Made by a program: the position numbers and the translations under genes. The notes under the pieces are model-generated. The model made no database searches, was not told the origin of the DNA, and saw nothing but the letters and a program-made list of their open reading frames with translations. DNA of 64,000 nt. It comes from Hydrolagus colliei (Eukaryota). Location: positions 154,132,001-154,196,000 of the forward strand of contig CM068742.1 of assembly GCA_035084275.1 (NCBI GenBank), written 5' to 3'. Each line of letters opens with the position of its first letter. Position 1 is the stretch's first letter. Shown here piece by piece: positions 3,767 to 64,000 of this stretch.

Positions 3767-3800
<34 letters not shown>

Positions 3801-18786: not shown

Positions 18787-18823
<37 letters not shown>

Positions 18824-19555: not shown

Positions 19556-20418
19556 ATAGAATTTTACGGCACAAAAGGAGGCCATTCGGCCCATCTAGTC
19601 TGTGCCGGCTCTTTGAAAAGAGCGATTCAATCCCACTTCCCTGCCCGCTCCCCATAGCCTAATAGGCCTGTTCTCCCTAAATAAAGATCTAATTCCCTTT
19701 TAAAAGTTGTTATCGAATCAGCCTCCACTACCTTTTCAGGCAATGCATTCCAGATTCCAACAACTCGCTGAGTGAAAAAAATTCTCCTCAGCTCCCCTCT
19801 ACTTCGCCTTGAAACTATTTTAAATCTGTGACCACCAGTCACAGATTCGCCCACGAGTGGAAATAGTATTTATCTATTTGCCCTATCGAAACCCCTCATG
19901 ATCTTATAAACCTCAATGAGGTCTCCCCTCAATCTTCTCTGCTCCAGAGAGAATAACCCTAGCCTATCTAGCCTCTCTTCATAGCTGAAGTCCCTCAATC
20001 CTGGCACCATCCTAGTAAATCTTCTTTGTACCCTTTCCAATGTCTTCACATCCTTTCTGTAGTGTGTTGACCAGAATTGAACTGAGGCCTCAGTATTCCA
20101 GCTGAGGCCTCACCAAAGTTTTATAGAGGTTAGTCAGCACTTCCTGACTTTTGTATTCTATACCCCTATTTATAAAGCCTAGTATCCCATATGCCTTCTT
20201 AACAGCTTTGTCTACCTGTCCTGCCATGTTCAACAAATCACTAACACAAATCCCCAGGTCTCTCTGTTCCTTCACACCATTTAAAATTGTACTATCTAGC
20301 CTATATTGCCTCCCTTCATTTCTTCTCCCAAAATGCATCACCTCACATTCCTCTGCATTAAACTTCATCTGCCATGTGTCTGCCCACTTTACCAATTTGT
20401 CTATATCCTCTTGCAGTG
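19556..20418 (-). mobile_element. CR1 3' fragment (duplicate of 6337-7198)
   Basis: Same breakpoints and the same tgaggcctca insertion. Confidence 0.92.
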
Positions 20419-27054: not shown

Positions 27055-27444
27055 GGCTCAGTGAGAATGGCTGGACAATGGAGACCCTGATACAGTGACC
27101 GGCAGGTTAGGGTCACCAGTCATCATGTACTGCAAGTTCACTCACCCTCACCCCAGATACACAGGCAACATCACCATCATGTGGAAGGGAGGCTGGGCTG
27201 GTCCTGTGTATTTTAAATATACAAACTATAGGCCGGATTCACAGGGAAAGTATCAAAATATCATTGATGTAAACGAGGGAGATCGACACCGAGTGATTGG
27301 GAAACTGAGGAGGAACGACGCTACAATACAGATAAACCAGCTGAGGGGAGAGGACAATGATAAGCTGTTCTCCTGTCGTGTGGAGCTCCAGGGTGAGGGC
27401 AGACAGTTTGAAACTGGCCCCAGATACATGTCTGTATGTTACAG
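27055..27444 (+). pseudogene. SIGLEC15: SIGLEC15-like copy 1, V-set exon 1 (frameshifted)
   Basis: cacag|...cag|gtgagg boundaries, 390 bp. YCKFTHPHPRYTGNITIMWKGGWAGPVYF...RNDATIQINQL...FSCRVE resembles the recalled Siglec-15 V-set (CTFTHPHRHYDGPLTAIW, GNPRRND, YFCRVE). A 1-bp loss at 27085-27087 gives TGA at 27096 in the phase-1 frame. The leader exon is absent upstream. Confidence 0.85.
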
Positions 27445-27736
27445 GTGAGGAACGATGGGAAGTGGGAATGAGACGTGATGATCCTCACTGGTGCCGGAGT
27501 CAGTGGGAAGTGTCTCGCCCAGGACGGACAATAGGGAGCGAGTGTTCCCAGTGAAGGAAGGTGTGTAACAGGGGCTGGCAGGGACAGTGAGTGAACGGCT
27601 GATGGGAGGGAGGGCTGTGCTGTACACTGACCTGTCACTGTGGGAATGTCTATTTGCCAAGGCTCCTCACATGTGTGTAACATGTACTGTGTCACACTGA
27701 CTGCTCTGCACTATTCCAATCCTGTTCCTGTCTCAG

Positions 27737-28120
27737 GTCATGAAGAGAAGCTCCCATCAGTGACTGGTACCAAGGGAGGTGATGCCACACTGCCCTGCTC
27801 CTTCACCAGGCCCAACACACACCAGAATTGTGCCACAGTCACAGTGATTTGGAGGAGAGGGAGGCCACAAGGGCAGGTGGTTTCTAATGACTCTCTTGAC
27901 CTCACCGCCCGCAGCAAACCCGGTGAATCAGAGATAGTGAATGAAGGAAATCGCTATAACCTGGTCGGGAATGTGAGGGATGGAGACGCTTCCCTGAGGA
28001 TCAGGGACCTGGAGTTAAACAACACCAACCAGTATTTCTGTCACGTACACGTCATGTTTACCAATGGTGGACAACAACAGGGACAGGTGACGCAGGACAT
28101 GTCATGGCTGTGGGTTGTTG
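27737..28120 (+). CDS. SIGLEC15: SIGLEC15-like copy 1, V-set exon 2 (open, phase 1-1); no downstream C2/TM exon in this copy
   Basis: tctcag|gt cat...gtt g|gtaaga, 384 bp; GGDATLPCSF...VIWRRG...DASLRIRDL...QYFCHV. Homology to the copy-2 intron breaks off at ~29465, before the C2 exon. Confidence 0.8.
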
Positions 28121-28859
28121 GTAAGAAATCTCTTGTCTCTGTGGGACATGGAAAGGGATAAATAATCAGGTTAATCTTCACTGGAGCATCATTACAGATA
28201 CGGTTTGTCTCATTCCTTACCCTGTGCCTCAACAACAACAACAAAATTACACTTGAATATCGCCTCTCAAGTCAGGAGGACGTCCCAAGGCTCTGGACAG
28301 CCACTGTGTCAAACCTGAGCTCGGGTCGGCATGGGGAGGGAAGGAGGGAATTAGGAGTGGTCAATGGGACCATCGAAGAGGAGAGTCTTGAGTAGAGGAT
28401 CTGGGGAGGGGAAAAGGTGGAGAGGCTACAGGATGGATTTTCCAGAGGTTGGGGACAGAGTGGCCAAAGGCCTCGCTTCACATGGTAATTATCTCAACAA
28501 ACATGATGTGAAACAGCAGAGCCTGTTACTGGGGGCAGGGATTCTTCTCACTTGCCTCCAGTTAACGCTGCAGCCAAAGTTAGGGTGATCCTAGCTGGAC
28601 AAGCAGCCGGTATCTTGCCAATGACATGTGACGTAGTTGTCACAAAATCACAGGATTGATCTGAATGAAGAAACCACATCTAATCTTATCCTTACTGAAT
28701 GCCCCAATCACCCCCTAATCCCTACCAACCCCTCGCCCCCCAAAACATTGGTATCAAGCGGAGTCTAACAGTCTGTAATTGCTCTGTCTGAAGGGAAATT
28801 GGATAGATATGTAAAAAGGAAACATTTTCAGGGCTCTGGGGTAAGAGCGAGACAGTGGG

Positions 28860-32658: not shown

Positions 32659-32710
32659 ATGATGCTGTGCGCTGTGCTCTGTGCCCTAGTCCTGTCAGCC
32701 TCTGCCTTAC
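32659..32710 (+). CDS. SIGLEC15: Signal-peptide (leader) exon, extra copy
   Basis: MMLCAVLCALVLSASAL + c|gtaagt consensus phase-1 donor. Confidence 0.7.
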
Positions 32711-33974
32711 GTAAGTACTTTCCAATCAGTAACTATCCCTTCTGGAATTCCATCCCACAATCCCCTCCCTGACCTCCTTCAAGTCTCACCTCAAGACTCT
32801 CCTCTTCGATGGTCCCATTGGCAACTCCCTGTCCTCAGCTCGGGTCTGATACAGTGACTGTCCAGTGCCTTGGGATGACCTCCTGATGTAAAGTCACTGC
32901 AGAAGTGTAATTCCGTGGTTGTTGTTGTTCATGTCACAAGAGAGAGACCTGGGTTCAATTCCCAGCAGGGCAAAATGTTGGCCAAGTTTCCTTACTCCAC
33001 AAGCCAATGATTACCTGGCAGTAAGTAGGAACCCAGTTGTTAGTCGATTGGAGAATCACTTTTCATAATTAGTTATAAAAATTATAATTAATTGATCAAA
33101 TCGATCCATGGCTGTTTGTAGGACACGGCTGTGTTGAATTCTCTGCTGTGATTCACTCACAAAATATAATCAAGTCACTTTACAGATTATTCCGTGAAGA
33201 TCTTTGAGACGACAAATGCAACGATTGTTAGTGATGACCTGGAGTTGCAGACCCAGTGTAAAATAGTTAAGAGAATGGGACGGTGGAAGGATTAGTGTTG
33301 GGAAGAACAGTACAGAGGCTCAGAACAAAGCAGACGTGGGGGGTGGAACTCAGACAGTGACCACAGAACGAGGGGAGGATGGAAATAGAAGGGTGAACAG
33401 TTGTGTCAGTGTGAAGCAGGCATGTGAGGGGAAGTGGTGAAGAGATGATGCTGGGAGCTGTGCTCTGTCCCTGGTCCCGGAATTTAGTGTTGACCTAATA
33501 GAGGATGAATAGGGGAACTAGGAATAGATTATTTCTGCTGATCAGCCAGATAGTTTCAACAGGGACTTATCTGAAACCACAACAAAAATAGCAACCAAGG
33601 GGAGGGCGTGGAAACTCTGTCCTTACACAGCAGGGTTGCAGTTGTGGAACCAACTACAATCACGGCAAAATCCATCAAGTCTATAAAGGGATTTGAATAG
33701 ATGTTCCAGAGGATGTACATTAAAAGGTGTGGGGGGTGGGGGAGTGACCCAACTCCCACATCGGGTCCAAATCCCTAATTGTCCAGGGCCTTGGGACATC
33801 CTCCCAACATGAAAGTGCTGTAGAATGTCATGTATTTGGGATATAAAGCTGTGGGCAATGTAAACGAGTATTAAACTTCACCCAGTGAGTGTAACATGGG
33901 GCGGGGGCAGAGTTAGTGTTAAAACATTGCAGAGGATCAGACAAGGGTGATGTGGGGGATGGAGCTCTGGTGGT

Positions 33975-34074: not shown

Positions 34075-34126
34075 ATGATGCTGGGAGCTGTGCTCTGCGC
34101 CCTGGTCCTGTCAGCCTCTGCCTTAC
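34075..34126 (+). CDS. SIGLEC15: SIGLEC15-like copy 2, leader exon
   Basis: MMLGAVLCALVLSASAL + c|gtacgt phase-1 donor; hydrophobic signal peptide. Confidence 0.8.
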
Positions 34127-34159
34127 GTACGTACTTTCCAATCGGTAACTATAATAACT

Positions 34160-36158: not shown

Positions 36159-36548
36159 GGATCAGTGTGAATGGCTGGACAATGGAGACCCTGATACAGT
36201 GACCGGCAGGTTAGGGTCACCAGTCATCATGTATTGCAAGTTCACTCACCCTCACCCCAGATACACAGGCAACATCACCATCAGGTGGAAGGGAGGCTGG
36301 GCTGGTCCTGTGTATTTTAAATATACAAACTATAGGCCAGATTCACAGGGAAAGTATCAAAATGTCATTGATGTAAACGAGGGAGATGGACACTGAGTGA
36401 TTGGGAACCCGAGGAGGAACGACGCTACAATACAGATAAACCAGCTGAGGGGAGAGGACAATAATAAGAAGTTCAACTGTCGTGTGGAGCTCCAGGGTGA
36501 GGGCAGACAGTTTGAAACTGGCCCCAGATACATGTCTGTATGTTACAG
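36159..36548 (+). pseudogene. SIGLEC15: SIGLEC15-like copy 2, V-set exon 1 (frameshifted, extra stop)
   Basis: 390 bp; same -1 (36189-36191) and +1 C-run changes; TGA at 36394; GNPRRND and CRVE (Arg 36481-36483) retained. Confidence 0.85.
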
Positions 36549-41049: not shown

Positions 41050-41282
41050 ATGTGTGTGTGTTCCAAACCACATGGCATCTTTTTGTTTAAAACATTCTAA
41101 TTGATTCAATTATTCACTACATGATCAATAATCCTTATTCTATACTATACTATCATTTCAACTATGACAACACTGACCTTTCACTGTGGGAATGTCTATT
41201 TGCCAAGGCTCCTCACATGTGTGTAACATGTACTGTGTCACACTGACTGCTCTGCACTATTCCAATCCTGTTCCTGTCTCAG

Positions 41283-41666
41283 GTCATGAAGAGAAGCTCC
41301 CGTCAGTGACTGGTACCAAGGGAGGTGATGCCACACTGCCCTGCTCCTTCACCAGGCCCAACACACACCAGAATCCTGCCACAGTCACAGTGATTTGGAG
41401 GAGAGGGAGGCCACAAGGGCAGCCAGTTACTAATGACACTCTTGACCTCGCCGCCCGCTCCAACCCCAGGGAGTCAGAGACAGTGAATGAAGGAAATCGC
41501 TATAACCTGGTCGGGAATGTGAGGGATGGAGACGCTTCCCTGAGGATCAGGGACCTGGAGTTAAATGACGCCGACCGGTATTTCTGTCACATACACGTCA
41601 TGTTTACCATTGGCGGACACCAAGAGGACCAGGTGACACAGGACATGTCACAGCTGCAGGTTTTTG
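41283..41666 (+). CDS. SIGLEC15: SIGLEC15-like copy 2, V-set exon 2 (intact)
   Basis: 384 bp, phase 1-1, open frame, canonical C/W/C, DADRYFCHIH (no Arg). Confidence 0.85.
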
Positions 41667-43929: not shown

Positions 43930-46900
43930 CCCCGGCCGTCATCCTGACTATGTCCCTCATGGCCGGTGATGGAGCCGGAGGTGGCATCGTGTGCACGGCT
44001 GAAGGGGAACCACCAGCCACCATCACATGGATCGACCCCCAGAATAACACGCTGCCCATCAACACCAGCCTCACACCAGTCACACATGTACCAGACACAC
44101 ATCTAACAGTGGGGGAGATCTGGGGCCTGAAGCTGAGGGGAACTTACCGCTGTGTAGCTGAGAACACACAGGGTAGTGACACTCAAGACATCTTCGTGCT
44201 TGGACCAGTGAGTGAATGGGTCAGGGAGAGCTATGAGGACTTGGTGAATAGTGGGGACAGGGACAGTGATAAGGACAGGGAGATTAGTGGGGACTGGGAG
44301 AGTAGTGGAGACTGGGAGAGTAGTGGGGAAAGGGAGAGTGATGGGGACAGGGAGAGTAGTGGGGACAGGGAGAGTGATGGGGACAGGGAGAGTAGTGGGG
44401 ACAGGGAGAGTAGTTGGGACAGGGAGAGTGATGGGGACAGGGAGAGTAGTGGGGACAGGGAGAGTAGTGGGGACAGGGAGAGTGATGGGGACAGGGAGAG
44501 TAGTGGGGACTGGGAGAGTAGTGGGGACAGGGAGAGTGATGACGACAGGGAGCGTGATGAGGAAAGGGAGAGAAGTGGGGACAGGGATAGTAGTGGGGAA
44601 AGGAAGAGTAGTGGGGACAGGGAGAGTGATGAGAAAAGAGAGAGTAGTGGGGCCATGGAGAGGTATGAAGAAAGGGAGAGTAGTGGGAACAAGGAGAGTA
44701 GTGGGGATAGGGAGAGTAGTGGGGACAGGGAGAGTAGTGTGGACAGGGAGAGTGATGGAGACAGGGAGAGTAGTGTGGACAGGGAGAGTGATGGAGACAG
44801 GGAGAGTAGTGGGGACAGGGAGAGTGATGAGGCAAGAGAGAATAGTGGGGACAGGGAGAGTAGTGGGGACAGGGAGAGTGATGAAGAAAGGGAGAGTAGT
44901 GGGGACAGGGAGAGTAGTGGGGACAGGGAGAGTGATGAAGAAAGGGAGAGTAGTGGGGACAGGGAGAGTAGTGGGGACAGGGAGAGTGATGGAGACAGGG
45001 AGAGTAATGTGGAAAGGGAGAGTGATGAGGCAAGAGAGAATAGTGGAGATTGGGAGAGTAGTGGGGACAGGGAGAGTGATGAAGAAAGGGAGAGTAGTGG
45101 GGATAGGGAGAGTAGTGTGGACAGGGAGAGTAGTGGGGACAGGGAGAGTGATGAAGAAAGGGAGAGTAGTGGGGACAGGGAGAGTAGTGGGGACAGGGAG
45201 AGTAGTGGGGACAGGGAGAGTAGTGGGGACAGGGAGAGTAGTGGGGACAGGGAGAGTAGTGGGGACAGGGAGAGTAGTGGGGACAGGGAGAGTGATGAAG
45301 AAAGGGAGAGTAGTGGGGACAGGGAGAGTGATGGGGACAGGGAGAGTGATGAGAAAAGAGAGAGTAGCGGGGCCATGGAGAGTTATGAAGAAAGGGAGAG
45401 TAGTGGGAACAAGGAGAGTAGTGGGGATAGGGAGAGTAGTGGGGACAGGGAGATTAGTGGGAACAGGGAGAGTAGTGGGGACAGGGAGAGTAGTGGGGAC
45501 AGGGAGAGTAGTGGGGACAGGGAGAGTAGTAGGGACAGGGAGAGTGATGGGGAGAGGGAGAGTGATGGGGACAGGGGGAGTAGTGGGGACAGGGAGAGTA
45601 GTGGGGACAGGGAGAGTAGTGGGGACAGGGAGAGTAGTGGGGACAGGGAGAGCAGTAGGGACAGGGAGAGTGATGGGGAGAGGGAGAGTGATGGGGACAG
45701 GGGGAGTAGTGGGGACAGGGAGAGTAGTGGGGACGGGGAGAGTGATGGGGAGAGGGAGAGTGATGGGGAGAGGGAGAGTGATGGGGATAGGGAGAGTAGT
45801 GGGGACAGAGAGAGTAGTGGGGACACGGAGATTGATGAAGAAAGGGAGAGAAGTGGGAACAGGGAGAGTAGTGGGGAAAGGGAGAGTAGTGGGGACAGGG
45901 AGAGTGATGGAGACAGGGAGAGTAGTGGGGCCAGGGAGAGTGATGGAGAAAGGGAGAGAAGTGGGGACGGGGAGAGTAGTGGGGACACGGAGAGCAGTGG
46001 GGACAGGGAGAGTGATGGGGAAAGGGAGAGTAGTGGGGAAAGGGAGAGTAGTGGGGACAGGGAGAGTAGTGGGGACAGGGAGAGTAGTGGGGACAGGGAG
46101 AGTAGTGGGGACAGGGAGAGTAGTGGGGACGGGGAGAGTAGTGGGGACAGGGAGAGTGATGGGGACAGGGAGAGTGATGGGGACAGGGAGAGTAGTGGGG
46201 ACACAGAGAGTAGTGGGGAAATGGAGAGTGATGGAGAAAGGGAGAGTAGTGTGCACAGGGAGAGTAGTGGGGACGGGGAGAGTAGTGGGCACATGGAGAG
46301 TGATGGAGACAGGGAGCATGATGAGAAAAAGGAGAGAAGTGGAGACAGGGAGAGTGATGGAGAAAGGGAGAGTAGTGGGGACAGGGAGAGTAGTGTGGAC
46401 AGGGAGAGTAATGTGGAAAGGGAGAGTAATGTGGAAAGGGAGAGTGATGAGGCAAGAGAGAATAGTGGAGACTGGGAGAGTAGTGGGGAGAGGGAGAGTG
46501 ATGGGGACAGGGAGAGTAGTGGGGACAGGGAGAGTAGTGGGGACAGGGAGAGTGATGGGGAGAGGGAGAGTGATGGGGAGAGGGAGAGTGATGGGGACAG
46601 GGGGAGTAGTGTGGACAGGGGGAGTAGTGGGGACAGTGAGAGTAGTGGGGACAGGGAGAGTGATGGGGAGAGGGAGAGTGATGGGGAGAGGGAGAGTGAT
46701 GGGGACAGGGAGAGTAGTGGGGACAGGGAGAGTAGTGGGGACAGGGAGAGAAGTGGGAACAGGGAGCGTAGTGGGGAAAGGGAGAGTAGTGGGGACAGGG
46801 AGAGTGATGGAGACAGGGAGAGTAGTGGGGCCAGGGAGATTAGTGGGGACAGGGAGAGTAGTGGGGACAGGGAGAGTAGTGTGGACAGGGAGAGTAGTGG

Positions 46901-48581
46901 GGACAGGGAGAGTAGTGGGGACGGGAAGAGTAGTGGGGACAGGGAGAGTGATGGGGAGAGGGAGAGTGATGAGAAAAGAGAGAGTAGCGGGGCCATGGAG
47001 AGTTATGAAGAAAGGGAGAGTAGTGGGAACAAGGAGAGTAGTGGGGATAGGGAGATTAGTGGGGACAGGGAGAGTAGTGGGGACAGGGAGAGTAGTGGGG
47101 ACAGGGAGAGTAGTGGGGACAGGGAGAGTAGTGGGGACAGGGAGAGTAGTAGGGACAGGGAGAGTGATGGGGAGAGGGAGAGTGAAGGGGACAGGGGGAG
47201 TAGTGGGGACAGGGAGAGTAGTGGGGACAGGGAGAGTGATGGGGATAGGGAGAGTAGTGGGGACAGAGAGAGTAGTGGGGACACGGAGATTGATGAAGAA
47301 AGGGAGAGAAGTGGGAACAGGGAGAGTAGTGGGGAAATTGAGAGTAGTGGGGACAGGGAGAGTGATGGAGACAGGGAGAGTAGTGGGGCCAGGGAGAGTG
47401 ATGGAGAAAGGGAGAGAAGTGGGGACGGGGAGAGTAGTGGGGACACGGAGAGCAGTGGGGACAGGGAGAGTGATGGAGAAAGGGAGAGTAGTGGGGAAAG
47501 GGAGAGTAGTGGGGAAAGGGAGAGTAGTGGGGACAGGGAGAGTAGTGGGGACAGGGAGAGTAGTGGGGACAGGGAGAGTAGTGGGGACAGGGAGAGTAGT
47601 GGGGACAGGGAGAGTAGTGGGGACAGGGAGAGTAGTGGGGACGGGGAGAGTAGTGGGGACAGGGAGAGTGATGGGGACAGGGAGAGTATTGGGGACAGGG
47701 AGAGTGATGGGGACAGGGAGAGTAGTGGGGACACAGAGAGTAGTGGGGAAATGGGGAGTGATGGAGAAAAGGAGAGTAGTGTGCCCAGGGAGAGTAGTGT
47801 GGACAGGGAGAGTAGTGGGGACGGGGAGAGTAGTGGGCACATGGAGAGTGATGGAGACAGGGAGCGTGATGAGAAAAAGGAGAGAAGTGGAGACAGGGAG
47901 AGTGATGGAGAAAGGGAGAGTAGTGGGGACAGGGAGAGTAGTGTGGACAGGGAGAGTAATGTGGAAAGGGAGAGTGATGAGGCAAGAGAGAATAGTGGAG
48001 ACTGGGAGAGTAGTGGGGAGAGGGAGAGTGATGGGGACAGGGAGAGTAGTGGGGACAGGGAGAGTAGTGGGGACAGGGAGAGTGATGGGGAGAGGGAGAG
48101 TGATGGGGAGAGGGAGAGTGATGGGGACAGGGGGAGTAGTGTGGACAGGGGGAGTAGTGGGGACAGTGAGAGTAGTGGGGACAGGGAGAGTGATGGGGAG
48201 AGGGAGAGTGATGGGGAGAGGGAGAGTGATGGGGACAGGGAGAGTAGTGGGGACAGGGAGAGTAGTGGGGACAGGGAGAGAAGTGGGAACAGGGAGCGTA
48301 GTGGGGAAAGGGAGAGTAGTGGGGACAGGGAGAGTAGTGGGGACAGGGAGAGTAGTGTGGACAGGGAGAGTAGTGGGGACAGGGAGAGTAGTGGGGACGG
48401 GAAGAGTAGTGGGGACACGGAGAGTGATGGAGACAGGGAGAGTAGTGGGGACAGGGAGAGTAGTGGGGACATGGAGAGTGATGGAGAAAGGGAGAGTAGT
48501 GTGGACAGGGAGAGTAGTGGGGATGGGGAGAGTAGTGGGCACATGGAGAGTGATGGAGAGCAGTGGAGACAGGGAGAGTGA
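43930..48581 (+). CDS. SIGLEC15: SIGLEC15-like copy 2, C2-set domain reading into a giant (GDRESS/GDRESD)n stalk; stops before the TM
   Basis: Acceptor tttctttatacccaaag|cc, phase 1; CTAEGEPP...W...GTYRCVAENTQG matches the recalled Siglec-15 C2 motif; frame open for ~1550 codons. Confidence 0.7.
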
Positions 48582-48850
48582 TGGAGAAAGGGAGAGTAGT
48601 GTGGACAGGGAGAGTAATGGGGACAGGGAGAGCAGTGGGGATAGAGAGAGTAGTGGGGACAGGGAGAGTGATGGCGACAGGGAGCGTGATGAGAAAAAGG
48701 AGAGAAGTGGAGACAGGGAGAGTGATGGAGAAAGGGAGAGTAGTGGGAACAGGGAGAGTAGTGGGGACAGGGAGAGTAGTGTGGACAGGGAGAGTAATGT
48801 GGAAAGGGAGAGTGATGAGGCAAGAGAGAATAGTGGAGACTGGGAGAGTA

Positions 48851-49894
48851 GAATCATAGAATCATAGAATCATAGAATTTTACGGCACAAAAGGAGGCCA
48901 TTCGGCCCATCTAGTCTGTGCCGGCTCTTTGAAAAGAGCGATTCAATCCCACTGCCCTGCCCGCTCCCCATAGCCTAATAGACCTGTTCTCCCTAAATAA
49001 AGATCTAATTCCCTTTTAAAAGTTCTTATCGAATCAGCCTCCACCACCTTTTCAGGCAATGCATTCCAGATTCGAACAACTCGCTGAGTGAAAAAATTTC
49101 TCCTCAGCTCCCCTCTACTTCGCCTTGAAACTATTTTAAATCTGTGACCACCAGTCACAGATTCGCCCACGAGTGGAAATAGTTTTTATCTATTTGCCCT
49201 GTCGAAACCCCTCATGATCTTATAAACCTCTATGAGGTCTCCCCTCAATCTTCTCTGCTCCAGAGAGAATAACCCTAGCCTATCTAGCCTCTCCTCATAG
49301 CTGAAGTCCCTCAATCCTGGCACCATCCTAGTAAATCTTCGTTGTACCCTTTCCAATGCCTTCACATCCTTTCTGTAGTGTGGTGACCAGAATTGAACAC
49401 AGTATTCCAGCTGAGGCATCACCAAAGTCCTATAGAGGTTAGTCAGCACTTCCTGACTTTTGTACTCTATACCCCTATTTATAAAGCCTAGTATCCCATA
49501 TGCCTTCTTAACAGCCTTGTCTACCTGTCCTGCCACCTTCAACGAGTCACTAACACAAATCCCCAGGTCTCTCTGTTCCTTTACACCATTTAAAATTGTA
49601 CTATCTAGCCTATATTGCCTCCCTTCATTTCTTCTCCCAAAATGCATCACCTCACACTTCTCTGCATTAAACTTCATCTGCCATGTGTCTGCCCACTTTA
49701 CCAATTTGGCTATATCCTCTTGCAGATGGCTACTATCCTCCTCACTGTTTACTATTCTCCCTAACTTAGTGTCATCTGCAAACTTGGAAACTGTACTCCG
49801 TACACCCAAGTCCAGATCATTGATGTAGATTACAAACAGCAATGGTCCCAAAACCGATCCGTGTGGCACACCACTGCTCACTTCCCTCCAATCT
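48851..49894 (-). mobile_element. Young 5'-truncated CR1 inserted in the minisatellite
   Basis: (gaatcata)n tail at 48851; nearly intact ORF2 C-terminus from DWREVSSGVP; TSD not resolvable inside the repeat. Confidence 0.95.
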
Positions 49895-52425
49895 GGGGAC
49901 AGGGAGAGTACTGTGGACAGGGAGAGTAGTGGGGACAGGGAGAGTAGTGGGCACATGGAGAGTGATGGAGACAGGGAGCGTGATGAGAAAAAGGAGAGCA
50001 GTGGAGACAGGGAGAGTGATGGAGAAAGGGAGAGTAGTGGGAACAGGGAGAGTAGTGGGGACAGGGAGAGTAGTGGGAACAGGGAGAGTAGTGGGGACAG
50101 GGAGAGTAGTGGGGACAGGGAGAGTAGTGGGGACAGGGAGAGTACTGGGGACAGGGAGAGTAGTGGGGATAGGGAGAGTAGTGGGGACAGGGAGAGTAGT
50201 GGGGACAGGGAGAGTGATGGAGAAAGGGAGAGTAGTGGGAATAGGGAGAGTAGTGGGGACAGGGAGAGTAGTGGGGACAGGGAGAGTAGTGGGGACAGGG
50301 AGAGTACTGGGGACAGGGTGAGTAGTGGGGACAGGGAGAGCAGTGGGGGAAGGGAGAGTGATGGGGACAGGGAGAGTGATGGGGACAGGGAGAGTAGTGG
50401 GGACAGGGAGAGTGATGGCGACAGGGAGAGTGATGGGGACAGGGAGAGTAGTGGGGACAGGGAGTGTAGTGGGGACAGGGAGAGTGATGGAGAAAGGGAG
50501 AGTAGTGGAAATAGGGAGAGTAGTGGGGACATGGAGAGTAGTGGGGACAGGGAGAGTAGTGGAGACAGGGAGAGTAATGGGGACAGGGAGAGTGGTGGGG
50601 ACAGGGAGAGTGATGGAGACAGGGAGAGTAGTGGGGCCAGGGAGAGTAGTGGGGCCAGGGAGAGTAGTGGGGAAAGGGAGAGTAGTGGGGACAGGGAGAG
50701 TGATGGCAACAGGGAGAATAGTGGGGCTAGGGAGAGCAGTGGTGACAGTGAGAGTAGTGGGGACATGGAGAGTGATGGGGACAGGGAGAGCAGTGGGGAC
50801 AGTGAGAGTAGTGGGGACATGGAGAGTGATGGAGAAAGGGAGAGTAGTGGGGACAGGGAGAGTGATGAGGACAGGGAGAGTAGTGGCGCCAGGGAGAGTA
50901 GTGGGGAAAGGGAGAGTAGTGGGGAAAGGGATAGTAGTGGGGACAGGGAGAGTGATGGAGACAGGGAGAGTAGTGGGGACAGGGAGAGTAGTGGGGACAG
51001 TGAGAGTAGTGGGGACATGGAGAGTGATGGAGAAAGGGAGAGTAGTGTGGACAGGGAGAGTAGTGGGGACAGGGAGAGCAGTGGGGATAGAGAGAGTAGT
51101 GGGCACATGGAGAGTGATGGAGACAGGGAGCGTGATGAGAAAAAGGAGAGCAGTGGAGACAGGGAGAGTGATGGAGAAAGGGAGAGTAGTGTGGACAGGG
51201 AGAGTAGTGGGGACAGGGAGAGTAGTGGGGACAGGGAGAGAAGTGGGGACGGGGAGAGTAGTGGGCACATGGAGAGTGAAGGAGACAGGGAGAGTAATGG
51301 GACAGGGAGAGCAATGGGGATAGAGAGAGTAGTGGGGACAGGGAGAGTGATGGCGACAGGGAGCGTGATGAGAAAAAGGAGAGAAGTGGAGACAGGGAGA
51401 GTAGTGGGGACAGGGAGAGTAGTGTGGACAGGGAGAGTAGTGGGGACAGGGAGAGTAGTGGGGACAGGGAGAGCAGTGGGGACAGGGAGAGTAGTGGGGA
51501 CAGGGAGAGTAGTGGGGACAGGGGGAGTAGTGGGGACAGGGGGAGTAGTGGGGACAGGGAGAGTTATGAGAAAAGGAGAGTAGTGGGGACAGGGAGAGTG
51601 ATGCGGAGAGGGAGAGTAGTGGGGACAAGGAGAGTGCTGGGAACCGGGAGAGTAGTGGGGACAGGGAGAGTGATGGGATGAGGGAGAGTAGTGGGGACAG
51701 GGAGATTAGTGGGACGAGGGAGAGTAGTGGGGACAGGGAGAGTAGTGGGGACAGGGAGAGTAGTGGGGACAGGGAGAGTGATGGGGACAGGGAGAGTAGT
51801 GGGGACAGGGAGAGTAGTGGGGACAGGGAGAGTGATGGGGACAGGGAGAGTAGTGGGGACAGGGAGAGTAGTGGTGACAGGGAGAGTGATGGGGAGAGGG
51901 AGAGTAGTGGGGACAGGGAGAGTAGTGGGGACAGGGAGGGTGATGGGGATGGGGAGAGTAGTGGGGACAGGGAGAGTAGTGGGGACAGGGAGAGTGGTGG
52001 GGACAGGGAGAGTAGTGGGAATCAGGGAGAGTGATGGGGAGAGGGAGAGTAGTGGGGACAGGGAGAGTAGTGGGGACAGGGAGGGTGATGGGGACGGGGA
52101 GAGTAGTGGGGACAGGGAGAGTAGTGGGGACAGAGAGAGTAGTGGGGACAGGGAGAGTAGTCGGGACAGTGAGAGTGATAGGGACAGGGAGAGTGATGGG
52201 GACAGTGAGAGTTGTGGGGACAGGGAGAGTAGTGGGGACAGGGAGAGTAGTGGGGACAGGGAGAGTAGTCGGGACAGTGAGAGTGATAGGGACAGGGAGA
52301 GTGATGGGGACAGTGAGAGTTGTGGGGACAGGGAGAGTGATGAAGAAAGGGATAATAGTGGGGACAGGGAGAGTAGTGTGGACAGAGAGTGTAGTGGGGA
52401 CAATGAGAGTGATGAGAAAAAGGAG

Positions 52426-52506
52426 AAAAGCGCCTTGGGACGTCCTCTCGACATGAAAGGCGCTATATAAATGTAAGTTTTGTTTCTTTGTTTGTATGTT
52501 TGTTTG
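52426..52506 (+). mobile_element. ~80-bp L2/SINE 3' tail inserted in the minisatellite
   Basis: agcgccttgggacgtcctctcgacatgaaaggcgctatataaatgtaag + T-rich tail. Confidence 0.8.
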
Positions 52507-52914
52507 AGTAGTGGGGACAGGGAGAGTAGTGGGGACAGGGAGAGTAGTGGGGACAGGGAGAGTAGTGGGGACATGGAGAGTAGTGGGGACAGGGAGAGTA
52601 GTGGGGTCAGAGAGAGTAGTGGGGACAGGGAGAGTAGTGGGGACAGGGAGAGTTGTGGGGACATGGAGAGTTATGAAGAAACAGAGAGTAGTGGTGACTG
52701 GGAGAATAGTGGGGACAGAGTGAGTGATGGGGACAGGGAGAGTGATGGGGACAGAGAGAGTGATGGGGACAGGGAGAGTGATGGCAGTTTCATTATCACG
52801 ATGCTGTGTCTGATGCCCGCAGCTAAATGTCTCTTTCTGCTGGTGATGGGGATCATTCTCATGAGGAAACAAAAGGTTTGCTCATTACCAGAAACGAGCC
52901 CAGAGCTGGGATAG
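52507..52914 (+). pseudogene. SIGLEC15: SIGLEC15-like copy 2, end of stalk + TM (Lys) + short tail, disconnected from C2
   Basis: ...ESDGSFIITMLCLMPAAKCLFLLVMGIILMRKQKVCSLPETSPELG*; Lys codon 52825-52827. Confidence 0.8.
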
Positions 52915-53148
52915 GTTCAGGCTGAGGTGATACATTCTGTTACAGTAGAGCGGGGGTTACGTAAAATCACTTTGGGTAAGCTTAATAAGTAATGGGCAAA
53001 AGGGGGTTTAGGGGAATCCAGCCACAGACTATCCAACCTCAAGCCTCCACACCCGACCAATGCAAGGTACGTACTGAGGCAGGCTACAGCCGGCTGGCCC
53101 GCTCTCCCCGCTCTTCACTCTCATCGCTCTCACTGACTCACTAGAGAC

Positions 53149-53154
53149 AATAAA
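53149..53154 (+). terminator. Candidate polyadenylation signal AATAAA
   Basis: ~235 bp after the TM-exon stop; conserved in the inverted copy at 60830-60835. Confidence 0.35.
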
Positions 53155-53399
53155 ACAGCACCTTACACTACCATAGCTCGGCTCAATCATTTTACCTTTG
53201 GACCTGGAAGGGTTAGGTTTTATGGATACATTAAATATGAATGAAACAACCTGGATTGTACGTTATCAATGAATGATAATGATGAGGATGGTCAACTCGG
53301 AGAGGGGTTGACAATCCGAGGCCGAGAAAACATCGGACTGAGGCGGGAGCTGGCGGCGTCCTCCCAAGTGAGCATGTGGGAGCTCCTGTGGCTCTTGGA

Positions 53400-53850
53400 G
53401 CTCCTGTGGCTCAATGGTGATGGCACGTGTCTTGCAAGCTGGGGAGACCAAGCTGGGGAGACCTGTGTTCGAATCCAGGCAGCTCAGGGTGAAACCTCCA
53501 AAAAAAACCCACAATACTAAAATTGGTCATTTCAATCTACGTCAGTGTGTGGGACACTGCTGTGCGCAATTGGCTGCCGCAATTCGCCGACAAATATATA
53601 CTTATCAACGTCCCAAAGCGCTTCACAGGATATACTGTAAAGTGAATTGACTGTATATTTGTGGGCGAATCGCGGCAGCCAATTGCGCTCAGCAGTGTCC
53701 CACACACAGTCGAGGATTGAAATGACCAATTTTATTATTGTGTTTTTTTGGAGGGATTATTATTAGGCGTGTGGAGTAAGGAAACTTGCCCAAGGTTTCG
53801 CCCTGATCTGCCTGGATTCGAACAAAGGTCTCCCCAGCTTGGTACTACAT
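53400..53850. mobile_element. Tail-to-tail fused pair of tRNA-SINEs forming a long inverted repeat
   Basis: Arm 53448-53600 is the reverse complement of most of 53650-53842; mirrored at ~60135-60590. Confidence 0.8.
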
Positions 53851-54025
53851 GTATTATACCAGGTTCATTGTGAAGCTTGCAATGTTGGTTCACAGTTACT
53901 CTTAACTGTGATACTATTTAATGAGTACAAAATTGTAAATCCTTGAAGTATTTCCCAGCAATGTCTCAGGATGGTTAACAGAAGCCAGTTCCCCTGGTTC
54001 AGTTGGTAACACTAGGACTAGTTGT

Positions 54026-54330
54026 GGAGTCCTGTAGCTCAGTGGTCAGAGCTATTGCCTTACCAGAGAGAGGCCTGGGTTCAATTCCCTGCAGGGAGAA
54101 ACCTTGTACAGGTCTCCATTCGCCACAGGCCTGATAGCAATCCCTCACAAATCAGTAAAGAATTGGTCATTTCAATCCATGACTGTTTGTGGGACACTGC
54201 TGTACGCAATTCGCTGCCTTGTTTTGTTCACAAATATAGTCTTTACAGTATATTCTGTGAAGCGCTTTGAGACAGTCTACAAGACATGAAATGCGCTATA
54301 TTAAATGCTGGGATTATTATTATTATTATT
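54026..54330 (+). mobile_element. Full-length tRNA-derived SINE with L2-type tail
   Basis: A box gtagctcagtgg, B box gggttcaattcc, L2-type tail, (tat)n; near-identical copy at 59654-59958 (-). Confidence 0.8.
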
Positions 54331-54874
54331 GAAGCACACTCAACTCTGGGCCAGAAACAACAACAACAACTTTGATTTATATAACGCCCTCCACGCCGGA
54401 CGGCGTCTCAGCTCTCAGAGGTTTACAACAGCGGATCCCGGGACAGAGCCAGGGGGAGGGGCAGAAAGCACGGAGACCAAAAGCAAGGTCACCTTTCAGT
54501 TGTGACCTGAAACTGGGAAGAGAGGGGGCGATGCAAAGCGAGTGAGGAAGGGAGTTCCAGAGTCTCGGGGAGTAGTGGCTGAAGGCCTGGCCGCCGAGGG
54601 TGGAGAGGAGGATGGAGCGGAGTAAGCTCTTGGTACCTGCTAATCCTATATTACCCTGCCCTTGCTACATCCATTGCCTACTTCAAGTCACGTCTACTCA
54701 TTGATCACACCTTCGATCACCCCCCGAACCCTCCCTGATCTGAACCCTCTACAGCTTGGGAGGAAATCCATGACTGTCTAGTGTCTTGGGATGTCCTTCT
54801 GATGTGAAAGGCATTTTACAAATATAATTTGGTATTGTGTTGTTCAATTGACTACTGCGTTTGCTGACAAATTG

Positions 54875-55690
54875 AAGTTTAATACAGAGAAGTGTGAGGT
54901 GATGCATTTTGGGAGAAGAAATGAAGGGAGGCAATATAGGCTAGATAGTACAATTTTAAATGGTGTGAAGGAACAGAGAGACCTGGGGATTTGTGTTAGT
55001 GACTCGTTGAAGTGGCAGGACAGGTAGACAAGGCTGTTAAGAAGGCATATGGGATACTAGGCTTTATAAATAGGGGTATAGAGTACAAACGTCAGGAAGT
55101 GCTGACTAACCTCTATAAGAGTTTGGTGAGGCCTCAGCTGGAATACTGTGTTCAATTCTGGTCACCACACTACAGAAAGGATGTGAAGACATTGGAAAGG
55201 GTACACGGAAGATTTACTAGGATGGTGCCAGGATTGAGGGCCTTCAGCTATGAGGAGAGGCTAGATAGGCTAGGGTTATTCTCTCTGGAGCAGAGAAGAT
55301 TGAGGGGAGACCTCATAGAGGTTTATAAGATCATGAGGGGTTTCGACAGGGCAAATAAAGAAAAACTATTTCCACTCGTGGGCGAATCTGTGAATCGTGG
55401 TCACAGATTTAAAATAGATTCAAGGCGAAGTAGAGGGGAGCTGAGGAGAATTTTTTTCACTCAGCGAGTTGTTCGAATCTGGAATGCATTGCCTGAAAAG
55501 GTGGTGGAGGCTGATTCGATAACAACTTTTAAAAGGGAATTAGATCTTTATTTATGGAGAACAGGTCTATTAGGCTATGGGGAGCGGGCAGGGCAGTGGG
55601 ATTGAATCGCTCTTTTCAAAGAGCCGGCACAGACTAGATGGGCCGAATGGCCTCCTTTTGTGCCGTAAAATTCTATGAATCTATGAATCT
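54875..55690 (+). mobile_element. Young CR1 3' fragment with 6-bp TSD
   Basis: TSD aaattg at 54869-54874 and 55691-55696; empty site at ~30178. Confidence 0.95.
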
Positions 55691-56846
55691 AAATTGCATT
55701 TTAAAATGTTAGATGAAATTCAATTCATAATTTAATAATAAATAATGATTTCTATGAAAGTTATGTAACAAGTTAACAATTTTCTCTTTTACCCAAACAG
55801 ACAAAGTGAAGATTGTCCAACTCTGGTCTCCTGCTCCATTCTTGTGGCTGAGCGACTGTTCACTGAATTCACTGTGATCTTGTTCTCCACTTCAGTACAG
55901 ACAGTTTCTTCTTCAAGCTGCTGGATAGAGGTGTCACTGCTATTATCAGAGTACAGAGAATCTGATCTCCGATATCAGGCTATATAGAGGTGTCACTGCT
56001 TATTACAGGCCATATAATCATAATAATTCTTGCATTTGGTAATGCACTTTTCATGTCTTCTAGACCTCTCAAAGCATTTCACAGAACAATCTCTAAAGTG
56101 AATTGAATGTATATTTGTGGGCGAAATGTGGCAGCCAATTGGGCTCAGCCATTGTGGATTCAGTGACCAAATATTGTTTGTCTCTTGAGGGATTATCATC
56201 AGGCCTGTGGAGTATGGAAACATGCCCAAGGCTTCACCCTGCTGGGAATCTTGTTTGAGGGGTGAGTGCTCTAACCACTGAACTACAGAACTTCACCATA
56301 TAGAGGTGTCATTGCTAATAACCATTGCTAATAGCTGATGGTTAAGCTTTGCTCTGTATATTTTTTACTGATCCACAATAAAGGTTATTTGCCTGAATAA
56401 AATGTGTCTGTGATTCCAAGTGAACCTCACGAGGGGAAGAGTGGCCGAGGTTAATAACAAGCCTTGAGTTAATCCAGGGCTACTAACTCCACTTACAACT
56501 TGCTTTACAGACAGAGTGGGAGTCATTTGGGAGATTGGGGTGCGATTGAGGAGGCACAGTTAATTAAATAGATGTGGTTTGGAGGGCATGGGGGGTTGGG
56601 GAATGGGGAGGGGATGGAATGGGGTGATGAGATGAAAACTATCTTGCATTTATACAGTGCCCTACACATATAATTACGTCTCTGAGCGCCACACAGTGGT
56701 GGAGGTGGACACTGAGCTGGGAGTAGATGGATGAGGAGTGGATGTTGCTGGCTGTATTTGTGGTGGAACGGTTGGGATTTATAATAAATAATAAGTGAAC
56801 AGTTGTGTCAGTGTGAAGCAGGCACATGAGGGGAAGGGGTGCAGAG

Positions 56847-59110: not shown

Positions 59111-61069
59111 CTGTGAGGACACACATGGTGTAATGTGAACCAGAACACAATATAAAAGCAAACAGGCAACACTGAGCTAGGACAAGAGTTTGGTTAGGTC
59201 ACAGCTTGGAGTAATGTGGACAGTTTGGACATCCCCTGATAGAATGATATAAAAGTAATGGAAAAGATGCACCTGAACCAGTTAACTTCGCTCCCCCGTT
59301 ACCCAGTCCTTGGATGTAGCAAGGGCAGGGTAATATAGGATTAGCAGATACCAAGAGCTTACTCCGCTCCATCCTCCTCTCCACCCTCGGCGGCCGTGCC
59401 TTCAGCCACTACTCCCCGAGACTCTGGAACTCCCTTCCTCACTCCCTTTGCATCGCCCCCTCTCTTCCCAGTTTCAGGTCACAACTGAAAGGTGACCTTG
59501 CTTTTGGTCTCCGTGCTTTCTGCCCCTCCCCCTGGCTCTGTCCCGGGATCCGCTGTTGTAAACCTCTGAGAGCTGAGACGCCGTCCGGCGTGGAGGGCGT
59601 TATATAAATCAAAGTTGTTGTTGTTGTTTCTGGCCCAGAGTTGAGTGTGCTTCAATAATAATAATAATAATCCCAGCATTTAATATAGCGCATTTCATGT
59701 CTTCTAGACTGTCTCAAAGCGCTTCACAGAATATACTGTAAAGACTATACTTGTGAACAAAACAAGGCAGCGAATTGCGTACAGCAGTGTCCCACAAACA
59801 GTCATGGATTGAAATGACCAATTTTTTACTGATTTGTGAGGGATTGCTATCAGGCCTGTGGCGAATGGAGACCTGTACAAGGTTTCTCCCTGCCGGGAAT
59901 TGAACCCAGGCCTCTCTCTGGTAAGGCAATAGCTCTGACCACTGAGCTACAGGACTCCACAACTAGTCCTAGTGTTACCAACTGAACCAGGGGAACTGGC
60001 TTCTGTTAACCATCCTGAGACATTGCTGGGAAATACTTCAAGGATTTACAATTTTGTACTCATTAAATAGTATCACAGTTAAGAGTAACTGTGAACCAAC
60101 ATTGCAAGCTTCACAATGAACCTGGTATAATACATGTAGTACCAAGCTGGGGAGACCTTTGTTCGAATCCAGGCATATCAGGGCGAAACCTTGGGCAAGT
60201 TTCCTTACTCCACACGCCTAATAATAATCCCTCCAAAAAAACACGATGATAAAATTGGTCATTTCAATCCTCGACTGTGTGTGGGACACTGCTGTGCGCA
60301 ATTGGCTGCCGCGATTCGCCCACAAATATACAGTCAATTCACTTTACAGTATATTCTGTGAAGCGCATTGGGACGTTGATAAGTATATAATTGTCGGCGA
60401 ATTGCGGCAGCCAATTGCGCACATCAGTGTCCCACACACTGACGTAGATTGAAATGACCAATTTTAGTATTGTGTTTTTTTTGGGGAGGTTTCGCCCTGA
60501 GCTGCCTGGATTCGAACACAGGTCTCCACAGCTTGGTCTCCCCAGCTTGCAAGACACGTGCTCTCACCATTGAGCCACAGGAGCTCCAAGAGCCACAGGA
60601 GCTCCCACATGCTCACTTGGGAGGACGCCACCAACTCCCGCCTAAGTCCGATGTTTCCTCGGCCTCGGATTGTCAACCCCTCTCCGAGTTGACCATCCTC
60701 ATCATTATCATTCATTGATAAAGTACAATCCAGATTGTTTCGTTCATATTTACTGTATCCATAAAACCTAACCCTTCCAGGACCAAAGGTAAAATGATTG
60801 AGCCGAGCTATGGTAGTGTAAGGTGCTGTTTTATTGTCTCTAGTGAGTCAGTGAGAGCGATGAGAGTGAAGAGCGGGGAGAGCGGTCCAGCCGGCTGTAG
60901 CCTGCCTCAGTACGTACCTTGCATTGGTCGGGTGTGGAGGCTTGAGGTTGGATAGTCTGTGGCTGGATTCCCCTAAACCCCCTTTTGCCCATTACTTATT
61001 AAGCTTACCCAAAGTGATTTTACGTAACCCCCGCTCTACTGTAACAGAATGTATCACCTCAGCCTGAAC

Positions 61070-61650
61070 CTATCCCAGCTCTGGGCTCATTTCTGGTAAT
61101 GAGCAAACCTTTTGTTTTCTCATGAGAACGATCCCCATCACCAGCAGAAAGAGACATTTAGCTGCGGGCATCAGACACAGCATCGTGATAATGAAACTGC
61201 CATCACTCTCCCTGTCCCCATCACTCTCTCTGTCCCCACTACTCTCCCAGTCCCCACTACTCTCCCAGTCCCGACCACTCTCCCAGTCCCCACTACTCTC
61301 CCTGTCCCCATCACTCTCCCAGTCCCCACTACTCTCCAAGTTCTCATAGCTCTCCCTGACCCATTCACTCAGTGGTCCAAGCGCGAGGATGTCTTGAGTG
61401 TCACTGCCCTGTGTGTTCTCAGCTACACAGCGATATGTTCCCCTCAGCTTCAGGCCCCAGATCTCCCCCACGGTTAGATGCGTGTCTGGTATGTGTGTGA
61501 CTGTTGTGTGTTCAGTGTTGATGGGCAGCGTGTTATTCTGGGGGTCGATCCATGTGATGGTGGCTGGTGGTTCCCCCTCAGCCGTGCACACGATGCCACC
61601 TCCGGCTCCATCACCGGCCACGATGGACAGAGTCAGGATGACGGCCGGAG
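61070..61650 (-). CDS. SIGLEC15: SIGLEC15-like copy 4, intact C2 + 8-unit stalk + Lys-TM + short tail exon; upstream exons lie beyond the window
   Basis: Acceptor ttctttatacccaaag|ct; 581 bp open (2+193x3); CTAEGEPP...YRCVAEN...(ESSGDW/ESDGDR)x8...FIITMLCLMPAAKCLFLLVMGIVLMRKQK...ELG*. Confidence 0.85.
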
Positions 61651-61765: not shown

Positions 61766-62865
61766 TAGTGTCCGGCGATATATCGATATATCGCTAAAAC
61801 CCGATATAATTTTCATATCGATACGCCAATATAGACATTTTAAATATATCGAAAAAACTATATATCTAGGTAAAAAATCGGGATGTGAGCACACTGAACT
61901 ACAAGACCCAGAATGCTCATCTCTATACACAATGCACAGACCGAGGTGCAAAGCCGCCATATTGTATTCACAGTCCTCGAATACAATATACGGGTATGCA
62001 AGGGGTGGGGGGTGAGAGAGACGGCTGGACGGGGGGGTGGGGTTAGGGGGAGCGAGACTGCTGGGGGGGGCTGAGGGGGAGAGAGACGGCTGGAGGGAGG
62101 GGGAGAGAGACGGCTGGGGGGGAGGGGGAGATAGACTGCTGGGGAGGAGAGGGGGAGAGAGACGGCTGGGGGGAGGGGGAGAGAGACGTTTGGGGGAAGG
62201 GGGAGAGAGACGGCTGGGGGGAGGGGTGAGAGACGTCTGGGGGGAGGTGGAGAGAGACATCTGTGGGAGGGGGAGAGAGACGGCTGGGGGGGGAGAGATG
62301 GCTGTGGGGAGAGAGATGGCTGGGGGGGGGAGGAGAGGGGGAGAGAGACAGCTGGGGGGAGGGGGAGAGAGACGGCTGGGGAGAGGGCGGTGAGACAGCT
62401 GGGGGGAGAAAGACGGCTGTGGGGGGGAGAGAGACGGCTGGGGGGGGAGGGAAAGAGAGACGGCGGGGGGTGGGTGGGAGAAAGAGACGGCTGGGGGGTT
62501 GGTGGGGGAGAGAAACGACGGTGGTGGGGGGTGCGAGAGAGAGACAGCAGGGTGGGGGGGGGGGGGAAGTGACGGGGTGCATGTGATAATATACAGATAG
62601 ATAGAGATGGGGGGGATGTGAGAGAGGGAGAGAGACATAGAGACACACAGACAGAAATACACAGAGATGGAGAGAGTGAGAGACACAGAGAGAGAAAGAT
62701 ATTTACATCCTGAGAAGATAGGCCCTGCACGCGCGCGCACTCCGAATGCGCATGCCGCGCGCGCCTGCGCAGTACAAAAAACCCGAAAATATCGATATTT
62801 CGGTATATCTCGATATGAGCCCATCGATACATTTAATCAGAAGATTTCCATATTGACGGACCCTA
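61766..62865. mobile_element. Non-autonomous hAT-type DNA transposon with internal G-rich minisatellite
   Basis: Imperfect 16-bp TIR TAG(G/T)GTCCG(G/T)C(G/A)ATAT; 8-bp TSD aaagacac/aaagacat; empty site at ~43815 on the other strand; ATATCGAT-rich subtermini. Confidence 0.85.
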
Positions 62866-63608: not shown

Positions 63609-64000
63609 TAGGGTCCGTCGATATGGAAATTTTCCAATTTAGATATGTCGACGGGCTCATATCGAGATATACCGAAATATCGATATTTTGGGGTTTTACG
63701 TACTGCGCTTGCGCGCGCGCACATTCGGGGCCTATCTCCTCAGGAGGTAAATATCTTTCCATCACTGTGTCTCTCACGTTCACTCTCTCCATCTCTGTAT
63801 CTTTCTGTCTGTGTCTCTGTGTCGCTCTCCTCTCTCACATCTCCCCCATCTCTATCTATCTGTATATTATCACATGCACCCCATCTCTCCCCCCACCCCA
63901 CCCCCCCTGCCACCGTTCCTCTCTCCCTCCACCCCCCAGCCATCTCTCTCCCCCTACCCCCCCCAGCCGTCTCTCTCCCCCTCGCCCCCCCAGCCGTCTC
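63609..64000. mobile_element. Second copy of the hAT element, opposite orientation, cut by the window end
   Basis: Begins TAGGGTCCGTCGATAT and is the reverse complement of ~62400-62865. Confidence 0.85.

Follow-up and report, generated by a model that had tools for sequence, protein, structure and literature searches.

Siglec-15 is known from a solved human structure (7ZOZ) and from orthologues across the vertebrates, and consists of a V-set domain with an arginine at the motif 'FCRVE', a C2-set domain, a transmembrane (TM) segment with a lysine and a short tail. Other cell-surface receptors carry an in-frame minisatellite of variable copy number between the head and the membrane, for example the 23-residue neck repeat of L-SIGN/CLEC4M, the 13-residue macroglycopeptide repeat of GPIb-alpha and the decamer repeat of PSGL-1. 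Here we describe a locus that can be compared with both. In a stretch of 64,000 nucleotides from Hydrolagus colliei (assembly GCA_035084275.1, contig CM068742.1, positions 154,132,001 to 154,196,000; this whole stretch, which is free of N, is called the window below) four copies of a Siglec-15-like gene were mapped by tblastn of a Callorhinchus milii protein (P0001) on the window and by alignment of the copies. In copy 2 an 18-bp coding repeat in the stalk has grown to several kilobases, which the first-pass annotation read as a possible giant stalk of the receptor. Our results make it likely instead that copy 2 is a pseudogene in which a coding minisatellite ran away, and that the giant stalk is a genomic relic and not a feature of any protein.

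Tandem Repeats Finder, run on the window, reports a single 18-bp array at 44218-52779 (473.8 nominal copies, 75% matches, score 6751) and, at 61200-61341, a second array with 7.9 copies of the complementary unit. The unit of the long array, GACAGGGAGAGTAGTGGG, is translated as D-R-E-S-S-G, and the array sits between a C2-set immunoglobulin (Ig) segment and the lysine-bearing TM segment of copy 2. Wrap-around alignment to GACAGGGAGAGTAGTGGG gives about 418 true units (7.5 kb), in two parts (Table 1). The nominal number is higher because a 1,038-bp insertion is counted within the array. The Ig segment, which is preceded by an AG acceptor before 43930, reads PAVILTMSLMAGDGAGGGIVCTAEGEPPATITW...YRCVAENTQGSDTQDIFVLGP and continues through the first stalk residues into hexapeptides of the D-R-E-S-S-G type; after the array the sequence reads SFIITMLCLMPAAKCLFLLVMGIILMRKQKVCSLPETSPELG and then TAG at 52912-52914. 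The first-pass annotation had described a giant in-frame variable number tandem repeat (VNTR) of about 400 units with these exon limits, some 240 of the units being read without a stop, and its coordinates agree with ours throughout. The units have diverged: 405 of them fall into 112 distinct types and differ by about 10% from the consensus, and their order is non-periodic. A search for a simple higher-order period in the array gave no more than a weak peak at 85 units and some long blocks, and a blastn comparison of the array with itself was uninformative. The blocks consist of 16-22 units with 98-99.5% identity at an offset of 81-90 units, and part A contains an internal block duplication of about 1.5 kb (45318-46793 versus 46938-48323, 98-99.5% identical). 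This duplication shows a recent unequal exchange of about 1.5 kb. The strand is strongly G-skewed, the GC skew in the array region being 0.74-0.83, and part A has 71 G-quadruplex-like motifs (loops <=8) on the plus strand.

Read from 43932, the sequence encodes a C2-type Ig segment followed by DRESSG-type repeats over 1,454 residues, with the first stop at 48579; the C2 frame of copy 2 is therefore open to 48578, a length of 1,549 codons. Over this array five of the six frames are open, two of the three in the sense direction and all three in the antisense direction, and the consensus unit has a stop in just one sense frame (GQGE-stop-W). The GTGRVV sense frame is open from 44248 to 48864 (1,539 codons), and the minus-strand frames over the array are open for 389-1,588 codons. 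Because five of the six frames are open across a purine-rich repeat, the length of an open reading frame (ORF) is uninformative here; the long open frame is a result of unit composition alone and cannot be taken as a sign of coding.

Selection on the encoded peptide was sought through the variability at each position of the unit and through the synonymous and non-synonymous counts of single-step variants, and no signal of purifying selection was found in the array by either route. Of 54 unit types that lie one step from an abundant type, 11 are synonymous, 43 non-synonymous and none creates a stop, where random substitution with the observed mix of transitions and transversions would give 10.6, 42.2 and 1.2. 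We also looked for an excess of change at the third codon position and found none, the summed variability being 0.51, 0.68 and 0.57 at codon positions 1, 2 and 3. The substitution counts match the random expectation, and we therefore conclude that the array evolves as neutral DNA. The counts of stop codons (none in the DRESSG register, one in the GTGRVV register) are powerless in this respect, there being few one-step paths to stops. The common variants of the unit, S or D at codon 5, D or E at codon 1 and R or W at codon 2, are all already found among the eight units of copy 4, and they have evidently been amplified together with the units.

The gene around the array is damaged in several ways. 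In V1 of copy 2 a CGA codon, which is CGA in copies 1 and 3, has become TGA (36394-36396). Within part A there is no net frameshift between 44220 and about 48543, but beyond this point the frame is shifted by a deletion of 8 bp (about 48544-48553), which leads to the stop at 48579. The 1,038-bp insertion that separates parts A and B has on the plus strand, at its start, a tail of (TAGAATCA)x3.8, is 97.4% identical to another copy in the window at 54873-55691, and belongs to a repeat family of which a longer member (4674-5582) matches RVT_1 (E=3e-24). Because of the tail repeat, the second copy and the RVT_1 match of the longer member, we identify it as a 5'-truncated long interspersed nuclear element (LINE) in antisense orientation. 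A second interspersed-repeat fragment lies in part B and recurs in the window at 10584-10631 (4 mismatches in 48), 25792, 28246 and 42563. Single-base indels at 51299, 51568 and 52022 break the register of part B into frame blocks, so that the DRESSG register is in frame 0 relative to C2 only in 44220-48567 and 51570-52038, and the last array block is, like the TM segment, in frame +1. As assembled, the C2 segment, stalk and TM segment of copy 2 do not form a single reading frame. Neither the LINE and second fragment, nor the 8-bp deletion, the 1-bp indels, the V1 nonsense codon and the five open frames had been noticed in the first-pass annotation. Copy 2 thus has a premature stop, frameshifts, a transposon in an exon and a neutral substitution pattern, which are the marks of a pseudogene.

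Table 1. Features of the Siglec-15-like cluster in the window and the homologous repeat in Callorhinchus milii. The V1 and V2 limits of copy 2 are the ends of tblastn matches and not exact splice sites.
Feature	Position	Strand or species	Remarks
Copy 1	V1 27086-27421, V2 27730-28143	+	Both intact; no C2-TM exon before the next leader exons
Copy 2 leader (signal peptide) exon	34075..34128	+	MMLGAVLCALVLSASALR; tblastn of C. milii P0001
Copy 2 V1 (V-set) exon	36190..36525	+	tblastn match; in-frame TGA
Copy 2 V2 (V-set) exon	41276..41662	+	Intact; tblastn match; V-set E=5e-15
Start of copy 2 C2-stalk-TM exon	43930..44217	+	C2/I-set Ig segment and first stalk residues SEWVRESYEDL
Array part A	44218..48848	+	~257 units of 18 bp; DRESSG register in frame with C2 to ~48543
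5'-truncated LINE	48849..49886	-	Antisense insertion into one repeat unit; 1,038 bp
Array part B	49887..52779	+	~161 units; several DRESSG frame blocks
Second interspersed-repeat fragment	52430..52477	+	Within degenerate patch ~52427-52505
Copy 2 TM segment	52780..52914	+	Lys-bearing SFIITMLCLMPAAKCLFLLVMGIILM, short tail, TAG; frame +1 versus C2
Copy 3	59079-57992	-	31-bp insertion in V1, 1-bp deletion in V2, no C2-TM exon
Inverted duplication arm	59311..61362	-	Partner 52622-54673, 96.8% identity
Copy 4 C2-stalk-TM exon	61073..61648	-	Intact 192-codon frame, 8 hexapeptide units at 61341-61200
LOC103188801 repeat	L002 10150-10215	C. milii	3.5 homologous 18-bp units (S-D-G-x-x-x) in C2-stalk-TM exon

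The short version of the repeat is found in an exon that appears to be intact. Copy 4 reads C2, eight 18-bp units, TM segment (SFIITMLCLMPAAKCLFLLVMGIVLM) and stop in one uninterrupted frame, the first-pass annotation having also given it about eight units, and its unit, a multiple of three, is in frame with the coding segments on both sides; here the repeat is a true in-frame minisatellite. The V exons of copy 4 lie beyond the window. The product of the copy 4 exon was modelled with AlphaFold from its sequence alone; the model is poor (mean pLDDT 48) and was used for the TM helix only, which it places at residues 151-181, with a mostly coil-like stalk. The same exon plan was seen in genomic DNA of C. 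milii, where C2, stalk and TM segment are contiguous in one exon at L001 12249-12617 and 24832-25209 and at L002 9864-10304; together with copy 4, this bears out the earlier proposal that the three share an exon. The activating members of the C. milii family have about one unit, just ...APGPQSDGSF..., and the inhibitory member LOC103188801 (P0016) has 3.5 units, QCDGNR-QSDGDG-HSDGGR-HSDGG, in a single exon of the NCBI gene model. Its 18-bp units (AGTGATGGCGACGGACAC and variants) agree with the rotated unit of the window, AGTGATGGGGACAGGGAG, in 13 positions out of 18. Both species may thus share one seed of the minisatellite, or the repeats may have arisen in parallel from the QSDGSF motif. Another 18-bp repeat, at L001 4251-4292, is unrelated to the stalk unit.

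Across paralogues and species the number of units is thus 1, 3.5, 8 and 418. The idea of a length-variable stalk holds for the short in-frame repeat, with about 1, 3.5 and 8 units, and fails for the array of 418 units, which is in the broken copy 2. In a search with the copy 4 exon product among 1.84 billion representative proteins, where most matches were to unrelated multi-Ig proteins, no comparable stalk was found in other relatives, which have short non-repetitive stalks; the first-pass annotation likewise named no such stalk as known in Siglec-15 orthologues. A 400-residue repeat query found no (DRESSG)n protein of 220-700 residues among 5.8 billion proteins, only one weak and irrelevant match. 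The short in-frame repeat is thus a real, if lineage-specific, feature of the family, and the giant version is peculiar to copy 2.

How firmly copy 2 can be called a pseudogene depends on the alternatives. That it might be a working receptor, with a stalk of about 400 Ser-Gly/acidic units, possibly bearing glycosaminoglycan (GAG), that would hold the Ig head at a great distance from the membrane, was the idea of the first-pass annotation, and it draws on the repeat being in frame with C2 over 1,454 residues and, in its short version, in copy 4, as well as on 134-143 S-G pairs with nearby acidic residues. The TM segment is out of frame, however, V1 has a nonsense codon, and the array is interrupted by the LINE, the second fragment, the 8-bp deletion and the 1-bp indels. 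Neutral substitution among the units, an ORF that follows from composition, and the empty searches of the protein collections speak against it as well. A functional 400-unit stalk is very unlikely because four independent kinds of lesion coincide with a neutral substitution pattern; the lesions of copy 2 already largely refute it, and we give it almost no credence. The giant stalk is very probably not produced, and we infer that copy 2 is not expressed. Removal of the repeat as an intron would rescue a normal short-stalk receptor from the same gene. Copy 2 does have GTGAGT at 44207 where copy 4 has CTGAGT, and all six intron positions of this cryptic, phase 0 donor (CCA/GTGAGT) match the donor consensus. 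On the acceptor side, the only pyrimidine tract before the TM segment is in the repeat-fragment patch, and its two AGs, at 52508 and 52511, do not keep the phase; the most plausible cryptic splice, from 44207 to this patch, would according to the sequence read CCA/TAG, and the V1 nonsense codon would also remain. Such a rescue is unlikely, and as an account of copy 2 we regard it as very improbable. Mis-assembly of a much shorter repeat could in principle have produced the length of the array or its lesions, since the array has long near-identical blocks of the kind that assemblers duplicate and some of the 1-bp indels are in G runs. The diverged units and their non-periodic order argue against it, as do the clean junctions of two different transposon-derived pieces within the array and the match of its flanks to copy 4 on both sides, and we think an artefact of this kind improbable.

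Several points nevertheless weigh against a dead gene with a relic array. The silence of copy 2 is something we infer. Those 1-bp indels that sit in G runs could be assembly errors. A comparison of copies 2 and 4 over the C2 segment gives a ratio of non-synonymous to synonymous differences per site (pN/pS) of 0.52, which may mean that the inactivation is recent, or that there has been constraint on the copy 4 lineage alone. Every frameshifting event falls in the 3' 42% of the array (p ~0.006-0.03, a post hoc statistic), which might be a trace of earlier constraint on the 5' part; the two halves do not differ significantly in substitution divergence (5.4% versus 6.6%). Skipping of the phase-symmetric V1 exon could avoid its nonsense codon, and the 1,549-codon frame could then give a secreted product that lacks the TM segment. 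Such a product, a soluble proteoglycan-like decoy, would consist of the leader, V2, C2 and about 1,450 acidic repeat residues up to the stop at 48579. It would agree with the open C2 frame, with Ig exons whose phase symmetry would let V1 be skipped without loss of frame, and with frameshifts that are all 3' of 48543. It also requires a splice form that has not been observed, relies on a clustering statistic that is post hoc, has no similar known protein, and is at odds with neutral substitution over the very units it would contain, so that we consider it very doubtful. On a broader proposal, the repeat of 8 units in copy 4 and 3.5 in LOC103188801 would be a length-polymorphic module that may carry GAG or phosphate and may tune the reach of the head, and copy 2 would be a long allele that died recently, or else the source of a secreted acidic product from its 1,549-codon frame. 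We see only a slight chance that this is right.

The assignment of the family to the relatives of Siglec-15, also made in the first-pass annotation, is in agreement with several comparisons. Among solved structures the best match of V2 plus C2 is human Siglec-15 (7ZOZ, E=6e-23 across both domains), and Pfam identifies V-set domains in V1 and V2 and an I-set/Ig_3 domain in the C2 segment (E=3e-6). V1 matches 7ZOZ with E=1.9e-12 and keeps the arginine, FSCRVEL being aligned to YFCRVEF, while V2 has a histidine at that position (YFCHIHV or YFCHVHV). In Siglecs the arginine of the F strand binds sialic acid, and V1 is therefore a candidate sialic acid-binding domain, if the family binds sialic acid at all. 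The TM segment of copies 2 and 4 and of C. milii P0001 contains a lysine, ...LMPAAKCLFLLV..., of the type that pairs with the adaptors DAP12 or DAP10, and such pairing is predicted here. The closest proteins are all from C. milii (62-70% identity), and NCBI names some members of the C. milii cluster 'sialic acid-binding Ig-like lectin 15'. The plan of the C. milii genes is leader-V1-V2-C2-stalk-TM, with up to four V-set domains (three V1 and V2) in some isoforms. Some C. milii members have a lysine in the TM segment and a short tail, others a plain TM segment and a tail with VIYSVV or VIYAVV, which resembles an immunoreceptor tyrosine-based inhibitory motif (ITIM), and these features mark the family as one of paired activating and inhibitory receptors. 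A plain orthologue of Siglec-15 would be a single-copy gene with one V-set and one C2-set domain; here each gene has two exons for V-set domains, and there are several copies, both tandem and inverted. The window genes are therefore a lineage-specific expanded relative and no plain orthologue. A search of the literature for Siglec-15 in sharks or cartilaginous fish turned up nothing on this family.

As inverted paralogues, copies 2 and 4 have 91% identity over C2 and the intron before it, and a 2-kb inverted duplication takes in the end of the repeat together with the TM segment and 3' flank of both. The TM segment and 3' end of the two copies are thus at 96.8% identity, against 91% on the C2 side, a difference that points to gene conversion at this end or to an exchange there of more recent date. 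Copies 1 and 3 are incomplete or damaged (Table 1), and with most local copies damaged the cluster looks like a birth-and-death family. A second leader exon at 32659-32712 (plus strand) is nearly identical to that of copy 2, 1.4 kb away, and both are upstream of the V1 of copy 2. Introns of this family also contain minisatellites of other kinds. Directly upstream of the C2 exon, G-rich minisatellites with a period of 24-28 bp occupy 62073-62564 and 63881-64000; C. milii has counterparts with a period of 71-73 bp, likewise in the intron upstream of the C2 exon (L001 11507-12205, 24454-24791 and 25631-25929). At 1-7600 and 17000-20800 there are large GA/CT-rich microsatellite fields mixed with LINE fragments, which are repeated about 17.1 kb apart (for example, 420-496 matches 17511-17587) and suggest that a segment upstream of the receptor genes has been duplicated.

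We propose the following history for the array. The genes form a birth-and-death Siglec-15-like cluster of a cartilaginous fish, with the closest available relatives in the chimaera C. milii, and are built from a leader, V1 and V2 and then one exon for C2, the membrane-proximal stalk and the lysine-bearing TM segment. Part of the stalk is encoded by a minisatellite with a unit of 18 bp, or six codons (D-R/W-E-S-S/D-G). This minisatellite has grown to about 418 units in copy 2, likely by slippage and unequal exchange, and the G-rich strand with its G-quadruplex-like motifs may have aided this expansion. The growth probably came after the death of copy 2 as a gene or went along with it, and the array now drifts neutrally.

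The chemistry of the repeat can be compared with that of GAG attachment regions. Xylosyltransferase prefers Ser-Gly in an acidic context. The conceptual repeat of copy 2 is 26% Ser, 21% Glu, 16% Asp, 15% Arg and 15% Gly, and its 1,454 residues contain 143 S-G, 134 [ED]-x-S-G, 10 S-G-x-G and 28 S-x-E sequences and no N-x-S/T. The S-x-E motif, which the first-pass annotation had named as a FAM20C site, is therefore absent from the consensus and much rarer than S-G. The context of S-G fits the preference of xylosyltransferase in part: the neighbours are acidic, but there is an Arg at +3/-3, and S-G-x-G occurs just 10 times. Serglycin and other Ser-Gly GAG regions are alike in that S-G is repeated and has acidic residues nearby, here E at -2 and D at +2; unlike them, the window repeat has an Arg in every unit and mostly lacks Gly at -1 and S-G-x-G. 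The eight-unit stalk of copy 4 would amount to an acidic Ser/Gly spacer of about 50 residues.

The window thus holds a chimaera-type cluster of Siglec-15-like paired receptors with a lineage-specific coding minisatellite in the stalk, of 1-8 units in apparently intact exons, and a clean example of a coding repeat whose runaway growth, to 7.5 kb, probably followed or accompanied the death of the gene. It also provides a caution, in that a purine-rich in-frame repeat can give kilobase-long open frames in five of six frames, and ORF length alone is no proof of a giant domain. Both elements are of known kinds, a coding VNTR in a receptor stalk and the expansion of a minisatellite in a pseudogene of a birth-and-death immune cluster. 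With Siglec-15 the family shares the V-set domain with Arg at 'FCRVE' followed by a C2-set domain, lysine-bearing TM segment and short tail; unlike Siglec-15, it has both V1 and V2, the latter with a His, forms a tandem multigene cluster with lysine-TM and ITIM-like members, and carries the hexapeptide stalk repeat, which is absent from other relatives. Like L-SIGN, GPIb-alpha and PSGL-1, it has an in-frame minisatellite between head and membrane with a variable copy number. In contrast to theirs, its unit has six residues, is acidic and Ser/Gly-rich and is neither mucin-like nor coiled-coil; the 418-unit form is in a pseudogene, and the variation shown here, with one assembly analysed, is between paralogues and species. 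If stalk length proves to be polymorphic and functional in the intact copies, the family would join L-SIGN and GPIb-alpha as receptors whose reach is tuned by a VNTR. With the hypervariable G-rich minisatellites and the pseudogenes of birth-and-death immune clusters copy 2 has in common its G skew, block duplications, transposon insertions, neutral drift and damaged neighbours (copies 1 and 3). Unlike those minisatellites, its unit clearly goes back to coding sequence, of which a short version survives intact 8 kb away.

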